64,000 nucleotides of DNA. Origin: Macrostomum lignano (taxonomy: Eukaryota). This document shows positions 2,015-9,801 of the stretch, in pieces. Location: contig NIVC01001370.1 in the NCBI GenBank assembly GCA_002269645.1, positions 215,297 through 279,296 on the forward strand, read 5' to 3'. The translations under genes and the position numbers were made by a program. Within the stretch, counting starts at the first letter, position 1. Every line of letters starts with the position of its first letter. The notes beneath the pieces are model-generated. The model was given only the letters and a program-made list of their open reading frames with translations. It searched no databases and was not told the origin of the DNA.

Positions 2015-2883
2015 CTAATCAAACATGATTAAACTGCTACTATCGCTGACATTAACGTTCCCTTCTCGGTCGGTGAGGTTGGAATTGACGGACTGGTCCA
2101 TTGCGTGTTGCTCCTCAGACTCCTCAGGCTGCTGGCTGCAGCTGCTCAGCCTATCCAGGCAGTCAGTCAATCGGCCGAATTCGGCTAAATCCGCATAGTA
2201 TCGTCGAATCGTTTCATCATGCGCAGATCTCAGTTTGCGCACAACAACGCGCGCCTGCCTGCCCGAGCCGTCGGCGTCGGCAATGGCAAACTTGCCAGAA
2301 ATATCATTAACTTGTTGAGCAAAATTTTTAGCCTCAGTTTTGGCGCCAAATTGAACTTCATAGGGCTCAGACTCCGCACTGCGCAGGTAGGCTACCACAT
2401 TCTTCAGGTAAGGATTATTGTCCGGCGGCTCCGCAATCCACGGCTGATTCCAGCGAAATTCCGGCTCACCAACGCGGCACGAATTTGCTGCCTCAAGCTG
2501 GCGCCGGCGCAGCTCCAAGAGTTTGCGGCAGGCCCGACTGTCGGCCTGAAAGCCGTTGAGCAGCACCCGCTCGGCCAGGTCGCGCAGCAGATTGGAATAG
2601 GCCAGCTGGAGATGCTGGCGCTCCTCGTCGGTTGTGCCCGACCGCGACACCTGCTGGCCTAGCGAGTCGATTAGGCGATGAAATCGTTGCCAAAGCTCGT
2701 CGGATTGGACGGCGTGAAGGAAATCCACGAGTTCGATCAGATTCTCATTAGCGAATGAGCGCTGGCTAAGGTAGGACCATTTTTCCTGGGACATTGTCAG
2801 GCGGAACTCGCCTCGGCGATAACGGCTCTCCGCTGACTGCAGCAGGCTGTCCACCAGGGTGCAAAGCAGACGCCGGCCACCGC
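2015..2883 (-). CDS. 2OG-Fe(II) oxygenase-like protein, exon 6 (last)
   Basis: Acceptor CTCAAATGTCAG| in phase 1 matches the exon 5 donor; CCCTAAC branch-like site upstream; frame open to stop at 2015-2017. Confidence 0.75.
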
Positions 2884-2989
2884 CTGACATTTGAGTCGCA
2901 TGCGGATGGCAAGTGTTAGGGCATATTTGGCTAAGGCATTTCTGGTTCCGCCTCCTTACATTCCTTTTACATACCTTATGACTTCAGTC

Positions 2990-3610
2990 TTCATACTTAG
3001 CTCGCTCCCCATCTCTGCCTTCTGTTCTCACGTGTTTCCTTGTTTCTCTTCTCATGCCTCCCCACTTCCTTCCCGTGTCTCTATTCTCTATAGTATCTCT
3101 CCCTCTCTCGCTTTCCACCTCTCCCCTCTCTTGCCGTCTCTCCCCTCTCCTTCCCATCTCTCCACTCTTCCTGTCTCTCCCCTATCTCGCTTCACATCTC
3201 TCCCATCTCTTGCCATCTCTCCCCTCTCCTTCCCATCACTCCACTCTCTCGCTTCCCACCTCTCCCCTCTTCCTTTCTCTCCCCATCTCGCTTCTCATCT
3301 CTCCCATCACTTGCCATTGCTCCCCTCTCCTTCCCATCTCTCCACTCTCTTGCTTCCCACCTCTCCCCTCTCCTTCCCATCTCTCCCCTCTCTTGCCATC
3401 TTTCCCCTCTCTTGCCATCTCTCCCCTCTCTTGCCATCTTTCCCCTCTGCTTCCCATATCTCCCCTCTCTTGCCATCTTTCCCTTCTGCTTCCCATATCT
3501 ACCCTCTTTCCCCTCTCCTCCCCATCTCTTCCCTCTCTCCCCATCTCTTCCCTCTCCTTCCCATCTCTCCCCTCTCCTTCCATATCATTCCCATGTCTCT
3601 CGCCTCTTCC
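2990..3610. repeat. CT-rich low-complexity repeat (intron 5)
   Basis: Degenerate CTCTCCCCTCTCTTGCCAT-like units. Confidence 0.9.
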
Positions 3611-3624
3611 CGTTCTCAGCTTAC

Positions 3625-3935
3625 TTGACTGCCGGGACCGGCCAGCCAGAAACGATCGCAAAGTTTTAGCAATAAAACTAGCAGAGTTAGCCACGCTCAT
3701 GTTAACAAAGTCCACCAGCCTGCGACAGAGGCCCTCGTGCTCGCAGGCCAGCAGACACTGCAGGCCGAATCGGACAGTGGGATTGTCCCCCCTGCCCGCA
3801 TTGTTGTTGCCATCGCGGGCGGCCACTGCGCCGCTAGTGGCCGATTCAAGCGCTCGAATCAGCAGCACGGCCAGCGGCTGCGGCAGCGCGGTGGAACTGC
3901 AGGCGCTGACGGCAGCCTCCAGACTGGGGCACCAT
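3625..3935 (-). CDS. 2OG-Fe(II) oxygenase-like protein, exon 5
   Basis: Acceptor ACCCTCAG| (phase 2), donor TCAA|GTAAG (phase 1); peptide WCPSLEAAVSACS...FLAGRSRQS. Confidence 0.7.
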
Positions 3936-4003
3936 CTGAGGGTGATCGTTGGCTGAGCTGCTCAAGAGGCATTCGTGTGTGCGACATTGTAGCAATAGGA
4001 GTG

Positions 4004-6577: not shown

Positions 6578-6589
6578 CCTGCTTCTTAC

Positions 6590-6828
6590 CTGGCCATCTG
6601 CTCAACCGTATAGCGACCTCGCAGAGCCCAAGCAATCCGAACAGCCGGAAAATCCGGTTCAGCTAGGTGCTTCAACAATTCAGCAATATCCTCTCGAGGA
6701 GACGGAGTTCCCGTTTGCTGTTGTTGCTGTTGCTGCTGCTGCTGCGTTGGCGAACTGCGGTAGCCGTCTGCGATGACAGCAAACTGTAACAGCAGCTGAC
6801 AGCCGGAGGTCATTCGCTCGAGTTTGAG
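6590..6828 (-). CDS. 2OG-Fe(II) oxygenase-like protein, exon 2
   Basis: Acceptor TTCTTATTCTGCAG| (phase 0), donor GCCAG|GTAAGA (phase 2); LKLERMTSGCQLLLQFAV corresponds to the last DSBH strands (family pattern HEVxPVTSGxRxxLxYNL). Confidence 0.8.
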
Positions 6829-6984
6829 CTGCAGAATAAGAAGGGAATTTAATTAACTGAACATTTTGCTACCTTTACATTTCTGACTGTCTTAGTAGTG
6901 CTGCTGTCCAGGTGTCTAAATATGTGTCTACATGTTTGTAAGTACCTACAAGCCTCTCTGTTTTATTGTCTGCCTGGTGTCTCT

Positions 6985-8660
6985 CTTAATGTCTGTCTTG
7001 GTGTCTGCATTGGTGTCTGTCTTGGTGTCTGCATTGGTGTCTGTCTTGGTGTCTGCATTGGTGTCTGTCTTGGTGTCTGCATTGGTGTCTGTCTTGGTGT
7101 CTGTCTTGGTGTCTGCCTTGGTGTCTGTCTTGGTGTCTGTCTTGGTGTCTGTCTTAGAATCTGTCTTGGTGTCTGCATTGGTGTCTGTCTTGGTGTCTGC
7201 ATTGGTGTCTGTCTTGGTGTCTGCATTGGTGTCTGCATTGGTGTCTGTCTTGGTGTCTGCCTTGGTGTCTGCATTGGTGTCTGTCTTGGTGTCTGTCTTA
7301 GCATCTGTCTTGGTGTCTGCATTGGTGTCTGTCTTGGTGTCTGTCTTGGTGTCTGCATTGGTGTCTGTCTTGGTGTCTGCATTGGTGTCTGTCTTGGTGT
7401 CTGTCTTAGTGTCTGTCTTAGCATCTGTCTTGGTGTCTGCATTGGTGTCTGTCTTGGGGTCTGCATTGGTGTCTGTCTTGGTGTCTGCATTGGTGTCTGT
7501 CTTGGTGTCTGCATTGGTGTCTGTCTTGGTGTCTGTCTTAGCATCTGTCTTGGTGTCTGCATTGGTGTCTGTCTTGGTGTCTGCATTGGTGTCTGTCTTG
7601 GTGTCTGTCTTAATGTCTGCATTGGTGTCTGTCTTGGTGTCTGTCTTGGTGTCTGCATTGGTGTCTGTCTTGGTGTCTGCATTGGTGTCTGTCTTGGTGT
7701 CTGCATTGGTGTCTGTCTTGGTGTCTGTCTTGGTGTCTGTCTTGGTGTCTGCATTGGTGTCTGTCTTGGTGTCTGCATTGGTGTCTGTCTTGGTGTCTGT
7801 CTTAATGTCTGCATTGGTGTCTGTCTTGGTGTCTGTCTTGGTGTCTGCATTGGTGTCTGTCTTGGTGTCTGTCTTAGCATCTGTCTTGGTGTCTGCATTG
7901 GTGTCTGTCTTGGTGTCTGTCTTGGTGTCTGCATTGGTGTCTGTCTTGGTGTCTGCATTGGTGTCTGTCTTGGTGTCTGTCTTGGTGTCTGTCTTAGCAT
8001 CTGTCTTGGTGTCTGCATTGGTGTCTGTCTTGGGGTCTGCATTGGTGTCTGTCTTGGTGTCTGCATTGGTGTCTGTCTTGGTGTCTGCATTGGTGTCTGT
8101 CTTGGTGTCTGTCTTAGCATCTGTCTTGGTGTCTGCATTGGTGTCTGTCTTGGTGTCTGTCTTGGCGTCTGTCTTGGTATCTGCATTGGTGTCTGTCTTA
8201 ATGTCTGTCCTGGTGTCTGTCTTGGTGTCTGCATTGGTGTCTGTCTTGGTGTCTGTCTTAGCATCTGTCTTGGTGTCTGCATTGGTGTCTGTCTTGGTGT
8301 CTGCATTGGTATCTGCATTGGTGTCTGCATTGGTGTCTGTCTTAATGTCTGTCCTGGTGTCTGTCTAAGCATCTGTCTTGGTGTCTGCATTGGTGTCTGC
8401 ATTGGTGTCTGTCTTGGTGTCTGTCTTAATGTCTGTCCTGGTGTCTGTCTTGGTATCTGCATTGGTGTCTGTCTTAATGTCTGTCCTGGTGTCTGTCTTA
8501 GGATCTGTCTTGGTGTCTGCATTGGTGTCTGTCTTGGTGTCTGTCTTGGTGTCTGCATTGGTGTCTGTCTTAGCATCTGTCTTGGTGTCTGCATTGGTGT
8601 CTGTCTTGGTGTCTGCCTTGGTGTCTGTCTTAATGTCTGGCCTGGTGTCTGTCTTGGTGT
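6985..8660. repeat. 12-bp minisatellite GGTGTCTGTCTT / GGTGTCTGCATT (intron 1)
   Basis: About 140 units; the source of the CLGV, VSVL and QTPR ORFs. Confidence 0.97.
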
Positions 8661-8811
8661 CTCTTAATTTGTCTTGATATCGGTTTTAGTGACGCTTTCA
8701 ATGCCTACCCTAGTGTTTTGTCTTGATGTCTGTACTAATGCAAGTCTTGGTGTTTGTCTCAATGCCTGTCTTACTGTCTTAGCGCCAGCCCGTCTGCCAC
8801 AGTTCACTCAC

Positions 8812-9801
8812 ATCAGCGCCAACTCCAGTTTGATCGCAGGGCAGGCAAACGTAGCTGCAATTGAAAGTCTCAGTAGCTGCACCAACAGACGATTCAGACG
8901 AATCATCCGCCCGAGGCTGCTCGCGGCAGTCGACAGACAGATCGGCCTGAGCGGACACCGCGGCCGCATCGTCTCCCAGCTCCAACAGGCGGCCAGCAAC
9001 GCTCAGCCGGCCGCCGGAAAACAGCGACGGCGGTCTAATCAACAAAATCGCCAACGGAGCCTGGCAAGAAAAGTTTCGCTCGTTATTGTCGCCGTTGTCA
9101 CCGCTGAGACAAGCCTCGGCCAGGTCGGTAGCTCCGCGAACGTCGCCAGCCGTCAGAGCGACCGCCGCTTGAGCCGGGTCGCAGCCGGCCTCCAGCACTA
9201 GCAGGCGGAGGAACTCGCAACGCCAACGCGGCGACAGATCGGCGATAGCATCGTCGCCGCCATATCTGACGCCGTAGATTGAGCTGGCGGCTGACGCGGC
9301 CAGAGACTGCACAGCCGGCAGGAATGCGGCATTGTTGAACTCCACACGATCCTGGCACGCCTGAGACACTCCGACGGCAGCAATGGACGACTCGACGCAT
9401 TCGGCCTCTTTGTCGAGCTGCTGCGAACTCGACAAGAATCGAATAACTACAGGCTCGCAGCAGGTTGCCAACAGTTCGAAAGTGACCGGAGACGGCACCA
9501 GCGGCAGCGGAACCGACTGATCGGAGATGGACAGGCCAGGGGCCGAGGGCACTTCGCTAGCCGAGCCAGCTTTGAATGCTTTCACCGCGCGCAATCCAAC
9601 TGAGAGTCCTTGAGCAGTCAGAGTCGGACTAGTTGTCCTGCCAGTTGGCACATGCTCCGACACACGTCTGGCCGCCCTAGCGGCGAATGCTATCGATAAT
9701 CGTTGACGAAATGCGGCGCGCTCCTCGGACGGACTGATTAAACGGGCTCTCTTCGCATCCGGAGGCGATGATGAGGAATGGTTGGTAGGCGAGTCTGGCA
9801 T
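8812..9801 (-). CDS. 2OG-Fe(II) oxygenase-like protein, exon 1 (330 codons)
   Basis: ATG at 9801, donor GAT|GTGAGT (phase 0); motifs APGLSISDQSVPLPL, DRVEFNNAAF, CEFLRLLVLEAG and LAILLIRPPSLFSGGRLSV match the 2OG-FeII_Oxy_3-type family as recalled. Confidence 0.75.

Follow-up and report, generated by a model that had tools for sequence, protein, structure and literature searches.

The prolyl 4-hydroxylases (P4Hs) and HIF prolyl hydroxylases (PHD2/EGLN1, vCPH, Chlamydomonas P4H and Bacillus P4H) are domains of ∼200–250 residues that share the Pfam family PF13640 with the N-terminal domain of a family of long proteins, whose 700-residue C-terminal modules they lack. The long proteins are distributed over many bacteria, fungi and oomycetes. 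Loss of catalysis within the wider 2-oxoglutarate (2OG)-oxygenase/JmjC superfamily is exemplified by JARID2, a catalytically inactive JmjC protein without iron-binding residues that acts as a cofactor of PRC2. Here, we describe a gene from a 64,000-nucleotide stretch of the genome of the flatworm Macrostomum lignano (GenBank assembly GCA_002269645.1, contig NIVC01001370.1, positions 215,297 to 279,296 of the forward strand; this whole stretch is referred to as the window). The gene occupies positions 2015–9801 on the minus strand and its product most probably belongs to the uncharacterized long PF13640 family as an animal protein that has diverged strongly and lost catalysis but is still maintained. 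Unlike the prolyl hydroxylases, the flatworm protein lacks the ligands for both iron and 2OG. With JARID2 it would share the concept of an oxygenase fold that outlives its metal ligands and serves in binding or regulation, although the subfamilies are unrelated (JmjC versus P4H-like PF13640) and no sequence relationship is detectable.

The locus is a genuine, spliced six-exon gene of M. lignano that is under selection. The joined coding sequence comprises 3354 nt including the TAG stop codon and encodes 1117 residues without internal stops; all five introns have GT..AG boundaries and a stop codon precedes the first in-frame ATG. An earlier note on this DNA, made from the letters alone, had given six phase-consistent exons, 3354 nt and an uninterrupted protein of ∼1117 residues, and was exact: the product matches PAA68815.1 (hypothetical protein BOX15_Mlig032258g2, Macrostomum lignano) with 100% identity over its full length. 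The GenBank annotation of the assembly derives from a genome-guided transcriptome assembly (PMC5730564), so that the five junctions are indirectly supported by RNA. No paralogue of the gene was found elsewhere in the 64-kb window.

The parent family was assembled using a bait sequence that was modelled on fungal PF13640 proteins and checked to match PF13640; it was used only for fetching database sequences and is not itself evidence. The bait search returned 485 matches, many with PF13640, and every named one was fungal or oomycete. The consensus of 44 fetched proteins reads PGLxVxGxGxIxLPL ... NPAW ... ELYKLLLYExGxxFKPHxDTEK.PGMFGTLVVCLPSxHxGG ... AWYSDVxHEVxPVTSGYRLVLTYNL ... LxHxYT...LKGxDR, and in their alignment the catalytic H, H and R each reach an invariance of at least 90%. 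A scan of bacteria with the bacterial-looking subset of the fetched proteins as query, and with one genome per species, confirmed at least 584 stretches in Planctomycetota, Bacteroidota, Chloroflexota, Proteobacteria and others, from which 43 full-length open reading frames (ORFs; ∼750–900 residues, uninterrupted) were extracted for a family hidden Markov model (HMM). Among these 43 ORFs, the HxD motif, the distal His and the TGNxG motif are each present in 43/43, the Arg in 42/43 and a C-terminal CxCxxC motif in 36/43. The modules follow the order N-terminal PF13640 prolyl-hydroxylase-like 2OG/Fe(II) oxygenase domain, LxHxYT...LKGxDR module, acidic linker, TGNxG...WYHRAAVVLWP module, long helical region and C-terminal CxCxxC...RRQHLH...TERKGSPxTLVCTK domain. 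Pfam annotates the bacterial members at residues ∼120–217 only, as PF13640, and a sequence search of the PDB with a bacterial member recovered no relative.

Homology of the whole flatworm protein to this family is well supported by profile comparison. The HMM of the 43 bacterial proteins matches it with 34.8 bits (E = 3.8e-13 in a one-sequence search) in three collinear pieces (Table 1), compared with a best score of 7.7 bits for shuffled sequences (1000 global and 1000 window-wise) and −0.8 for the reversed sequence. Using the same alignment, hhalign gives a local match with a probability of 95.4% and an E value of 1.9e-8 over residues 51–956, and a global match with a probability of 98.6% and an E value of 8e-15. 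The pieces recognized by HMMER are all noncatalytic, and the part best conserved with respect to the bacterial members is the helical region in exon 4. The N-terminal third, compared with a mainly fungal profile, shows all motifs in order (P = 0.0011 and 0.0005) with the same placement in a MAFFT alignment, and the oxygenase core alone (residues 78–356) scores 26.1 against shuffles with a mean of 14.3, a standard deviation of 2.6 and a maximum of 24.6. Downstream of the double-stranded β-helix (DSBH), the family module LxHxYT...LKGxDR...FLAxLE is present as LRGRYTVEQMARDGAAALQGEDRYVLRLL...ECFIALL, in which LQGEDR (residues 416–421) and ECFIALL are the counterparts of LKGxDR and FLAxLE, respectively. 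The hydrophobic-VxWP strand is also present, with KQFALVAWPAERSFDL (ALVAWP at residues 578–583) aligned by hhalign to RAAVVLWPxxxHFxVL. The C-terminal domain is aligned (HMM positions 672–781 to residues 957–1071), but lacks the CxCxxC motif, the position of which reads DNNPYLKN, and the His/Cys residues. The motifs listed in the earlier note (PGL..PLPL, LLVLEAG, an LPS-like GG, TSG, L.G.D and ALV.WP) are all present in the order given and correspond to conserved family motifs, and its family assignment is supported by the HMM and hhalign scores.

The closest known counterparts are the long PF13640 proteins represented by ∼790-residue ORFs of Schlesneria sp. T3-172 (L056) and of metagenome-assembled genomes of Planctomycetaceae (L008) and by fungal proteins annotated as 'Prolyl 4-hydroxylase alpha subunit Fe(2+) 2OG dioxygenase domain-containing protein' (P0005–P0124). 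The order PGL..LPL, NPAW, LYKLLLYE, LPSxHxGG, VTSGYR, LxHxYT..LKGxDR, FLAxLE, AVVLWP, LLxxLxDxxLvxrFlxxVl, hGW..fe and C-terminal domain is shared with these proteins at ∼20% identity. The flatworm protein differs from them in its length (1117 versus ∼800 residues), with three insertions in the core, polyglutamine (polyQ) runs and an 84-residue N-terminal extension, in the loss of the HxD...H triad, the Arg, TGNxG and CxCxxC, and in being encoded by a gene with five spliceosomal introns in an animal genome.

The loss of the catalytic residues does not depend on any alignment. His is absent between His50 and His384, a stretch that covers the entire oxygenase-homologous domain; with no His in residues 51–383, a 2-His-1-carboxylate triad is impossible, and this includes a facial triad at shifted positions, which the earlier note had named as a refuting outcome. 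The alignments locate the individual losses. The first His of the family is aligned to Ala224 in two alignments or to Gly234 in hhalign, neither of which is His, and the distal His to Gly326 or Leu331; the strand that should carry the latter reads CLPCDQTGVGAD. The 2OG-binding Arg of VTSGYR is replaced by Gln341 in MTSGCQ (residues 336–341) in all three alignments, and the triad aspartate is doubtful. A motif search found no TGN.G in the flatworm protein; hhalign shows a deletion of this region, with the next strand kept as ALVAWP. Three disordered insertions lie within the oxygenase core. The replaced HxD, missing distal His, Arg-to-Gln change and missing TGNEG proposed beforehand are all borne out, at positions that are conserved in 42–43 of the 43 bacterial members. 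Judged by its residues, the flatworm protein cannot hydroxylate by 2OG/Fe(II) chemistry. At the distal-His and Arg strands, the protein carries a C-x3-C-x2-C cluster (CSYVCLPC; Cys315, Cys319 and Cys322) and Cys340, respectively; this Cys pattern could be due to chance or could be a new metal or disulfide site. Positions of these and other features are collected in Table 1.

Table 1. Features of the flatworm gene and of the remainder of the window. Positions are those of the window; HMM denotes the model of the 43 bacterial proteins.
Feature	Window position	Strand	Residues	Content or family counterpart	Basis
Exon 1	9801–8812	minus	1–330	N-terminus of disordered Ser/Pro/basic type, followed by the greater part of the degenerate DSBH-like oxygenase domain	ORF and splice sites, family alignment
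PGLSISDQSVPLPL	9499–9540	minus	88–101	Counterpart of PGLxVxGxGxIxLPL	
EFLRLLVLEAG	9184–9216	minus	196–206	Counterpart of the ELYKLLLYExG strand ahead of the HxD iron ligands	
HxD region	9052–9183	minus	207–250	Family FxPHxDxEK; here a 44-residue His-free stretch with an insertion of ∼22–28 residues, low pLDDT	
PPSLFSGG	9010–9033	minus	257–264	Counterpart of LPSxHxGG	
CSYVCLPCDQTGVGAD	8812–8859	minus	315–330	Family (W/F)Y(S/A)D(V/C)xHE strand; distal His lost, C-x3-C-x2-C cluster instead	
Intron 1	8811–6829	minus		24/36-bp minisatellite at 6975–8665, fills nearly all	
Exon 2	6828–6590	minus	331–410	MTSGCQ (6796–6813; includes Cys340), polyQ run (6715–6744), start of post-DSBH module (LRGRYT)	
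Intron 2	6589–5877	minus		(GTA)n-type array, ∼232 copies, at 5882–6577	
Exon 3	5876–5309	minus	410–599	LQGEDR, ECFIALL, low-complexity linker, remnant of TGNxG...WP module (ALVAWP, 5357–5374)	hmmsearch piece 1, hhalign, motif counts
Intron 3	5308–4635	minus		21-bp minisatellite at 4690–5282	
Exon 4	4634–4258	minus	600–725	Start of helical region, conserved stretches at 4431–4496 and 4296–4340	hmmsearch piece 2, hhalign
Intron 4	4257–3936	minus		(GACA)n-type array at 4003–4257	
Exon 5	3935–3625	minus	725–829	Helical region, continued	hmmsearch, hhalign
Intron 5	3624–2884	minus		CT-rich 19/101-bp minisatellite at 3095–3611	
Exon 6	2883–2015	minus	829–1117	End of helical region, C-terminal domain (residues 966–1071; 2156–2473), acidic tail, TAG stop	hmmsearch piece 3, hhalign alternative alignment, motif counts
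hmmsearch piece 1			359–466	HMM 219–326	
hmmsearch piece 2			619–806	HMM 459–632	16.9 bits, best piece
hmmsearch piece 3			854–1071	HMM 590–781	
DCAF17 homologue	11115–12206	minus			Pfam, E = 1.7e-26
24-bp tandem array	23124–28383			5.3 kb, 219 copies, 95% matches	
Bcl-2 match	29590–30678	minus		N-terminal part of ORF, beside a 33-bp array	E = 1.8e-4, below threshold
(CTAT)n array	45462–46737			319 copies	
Peptidase_M13 match	47866–50005	plus			E = 2.3e-3, below threshold
Cadherin_3 (CSPG-type) repeats	57563–62919	minus		Three long open exons	E down to 8.5e-24

At least three near-identical copies of the gene are present in M. lignano (P0001, P0003 and P0004; 98–99% identity) and the reading frame is kept in all three. 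The locus of P0003, on contig NIVC01001003.1 (L001), has the same six exons, which align without gaps at 98.7–100% identity to those of the window, and identical splice-site dinucleotides, with intron lengths of 661, 572, 563, 930 and 1033 bp compared with 1983, 713, 674, 322 and 741 bp in the window, differences of up to threefold. Purifying selection acts on the open frame: the two coding sequences are separated by 16 synonymous and 18 nonsynonymous differences, which correspond to a ratio of nonsynonymous to synonymous substitution rates (dN/dS) of 0.37 (Nei–Gojobori), an estimate based on just 34 differences between copies that are 98–99% identical, and the synonymous excess has a binomial P of 0.0044. 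Directly upstream in both copies lies a homologue of DCAF17 (DDB1- and CUL4-associated factor 17; 6266–8648 in L001). The shared exons and splice sites, the selection and the animal neighbours together identify an integrated animal gene and not contamination. A further database entry, UniRef A0A1I8HXL1 (P0002), is a 553-residue M. lignano fragment of the same gene. Its source name, 'FH2 domain-containing protein', is unrelated; the fragment differs from the window protein by a short frame-shifted stretch and is probably an older, faulty gene model.

A model of the flatworm domain calculated by AlphaFold with the family alignment displays a β-rich core with three low-confidence insertions, with a predicted local distance difference test score (pLDDT) of 71.1 and a predicted template-modelling score (pTM) of 0.63. 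Its top Foldseek matches are almost all prolyl hydroxylases, led by Chlorella virus vCPH (E = 0.056, TM scores of 0.24/0.42) and followed by PHD2 and the Bacillus and Chlamydomonas P4Hs; these matches are not significant, and the predicted fold is weakly consistent with a P4H-like DSBH.

Several results weigh against placing the protein in this family as an inactive oxygenase. The usable model borrowed the family alignment and is hence partly circular; a single-sequence AlphaFold model of residues 60–356 was unusable (pLDDT 37.6), and Foldseek found nothing in the PDB at E ≤ 0.001. The oxygenase core is weakly similar, with an hhalign probability of 5–30%, and its homology is argued mainly from its position within the collinear full-length match. 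The homology case as a whole depends on profiles built within this analysis. A Pfam scan of the flatworm protein found no family even at E = 10, PF13640 included; the gathering threshold of PF13640 is 27 bits, which the flatworm protein does not reach and which its bacterial relatives pass with 31.8–31.9 bits. An exhaustive phmmer search of 1.84 billion representatives recovered only the 553-residue M. lignano fragment and so no relative outside the species, and a word-indexed homologue search with the full protein, or with polyQ masked at E ≤ 10, returned M. lignano copies only, a first run having probably been swamped by polyQ words. In the PDB, a sequence search with the flatworm protein gave no relative, GAPDH alone appearing at E ≈ 1. 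The small number of differences behind the dN/dS ratio also belongs here. As to function, a literature search on the gene identifiers and on long PF13640 proteins found nothing relevant, and no recurrent neighbour genes of bacterial members that might give a hint were found, the largest cluster being present at three of 49 loci. Separately, a match to TssL in an NCBIfam scan (E = 0.063) was rejected as spurious, and NCBIfam gave nothing else.

With regard to what the protein does, we see an even chance that it is a binding or adaptor protein, a role suggested because the noncatalytic modules are still recognizable and the gene is intact in several copies. Its action would be noncatalytic and would rely on the conserved helical, C-terminal and post-DSBH modules. 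The protein may have kept the surfaces by which its enzymatic ancestors recognized a partner or substrate, with the partner no longer being modified.

The first alternative to be weighed concerns the origin of the gene. Horizontal transfer from a bacterium or fungus into the flatworm lineage, followed by intron gain and loss of catalysis, is a possible origin to which we give distinctly less than an even chance. Every named relative that was recovered is bacterial, fungal or oomycete, and phmmer saw no animal relative. The silence of phmmer on animals is uninformative, however, because it was likewise blind to the bacterial and fungal relatives, and, since fungi are opisthokonts and have the family, vertical descent with loss is also possible. 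The five introns and the animal neighbours likewise speak against transfer, and neither the fungal-type nor the bacterial profile is a good match to the N-terminal part, their scores of 35.1 and 29.3 being too close to separate them. In fungal loci, the N-terminal modules occur together with the C-terminal ones, so that the architecture gives no pointer to a donor. It is more doubtful still that the full sequence of events took place in which a bacterial or fungal family gene was acquired horizontally, gained five introns, lost all Fe and 2OG ligands and was domesticated as a noncatalytic adaptor, the helical and C-terminal modules of which would still recognize the family target, possibly with a new Cys-based site.

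It is improbable that the gene is a relic, a former oxygenase gene that is decaying neutrally and is still transcribed but has no role. Loss of all of the catalytic residues and of several family motifs would be expected of such a relic, as would the large disordered core insertions and the polyQ runs, and three intact frames are weak evidence to the contrary when the copies are 98–99% alike. Against decay stand the intact 3351-nt frame over six exons and the synonymous excess between the copies (dN/dS 0.37, P = 0.004). The noncatalytic modules, moreover, are recognizable against bacterial proteins despite ∼20% identity, which implies that constraint acted over a long time once the catalytic residues had gone.

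Less probable again is a rebuilt site, in which the protein would still be an enzyme or metal protein, with Cys315-x3-Cys319-x2-Cys322, Cys340 and Cys207 binding another metal or a cluster. The placement of the C-x3-C-x2-C cluster and of a further Cys exactly at the distal-His and Arg strands speaks for this, but the site is purely a sequence pattern, the three copies are too similar to show conservation of the Cys residues and in the model the cluster lies next to a region of low confidence. No DSBH enzyme is known to work with such a Cys site, which we also count against it. That the gene is a lineage-specific orphan with a chance likeness to the motifs, as the missing Pfam match, the absence of any phmmer match beyond M. 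lignano in 1.84 billion representatives and the Ala-rich, low-complexity stretches able to create spurious similarity might suggest, is most improbable of all in view of the score of 34.8 bits, when the best of 2000 composition-matched shuffles reached 7.7, the hhalign probabilities of 95–99% and the family order kept by three HMM pieces and no fewer than eight short motifs along more than 900 residues.

Each of the five introns of the flatworm gene is nearly wholly occupied by a different tandem array (Table 1), and repeats are also found in the remainder of the window. On both strands, several frames of the 24-bp array are open, which yields artefactual ORFs of ∼1800 residues, and at least 12 further large minisatellites, for example (CTAT)n, lie at 12–52 kb. 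The three exons with Cadherin_3 repeats are probably parts of a single large gene for an extracellular-matrix protein like FRAS/FREM or CSPG4. The weak Bcl-2-like and Peptidase_M13-like matches are possible exons of further animal genes. At the second copy, in L001, a Cupin_8/JmjC-type gene lies ∼9.6 kb downstream, a position that is beyond the window in the copy described here.

Among the relatives, the bacterial members have scattered neighbours (L009, L014, L071 and others) that include a serine recombinase-like ORF, SEC-C-motif proteins and a pRiA4b ORF-3-like ORF; these labels were assigned by reading the sequences alone, and the neighbours hint at variable genomic regions. In two fungi, Chaetomium strumarium (L082, 6001–8550) and Aspergillus brunneoviolaceus (L083, 6001–9726), the annotation splits the family protein into two separate short genes, one for the N-terminal oxygenase part and one for the C-terminal domain, with the N-terminal part in L082 scattered over several frames; these split genes may be mis-split models or decaying copies.

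The flatworm protein, annotated as 'hypothetical' and linked to nothing by standard searches, is now placed in a family. That family is widespread and uncharacterized, with no studied member found in the literature and no PDB relative by sequence. If the gene was acquired horizontally, flatworms, for which few functional foreign genes are on record, would gain a further case in the form of a domesticated pseudoenzyme; if it was not, it would be an ancient opisthokont gene that has been lost from most animals. Should acquisition and domestication both prove true, the protein would be a natural 'catalysis-off' version with which to find what the family binds. As a naturally inactivated animal member, it suggests that the noncatalytic two-thirds of these proteins may be useful alone, and it would offer a handle on what the family recognizes.

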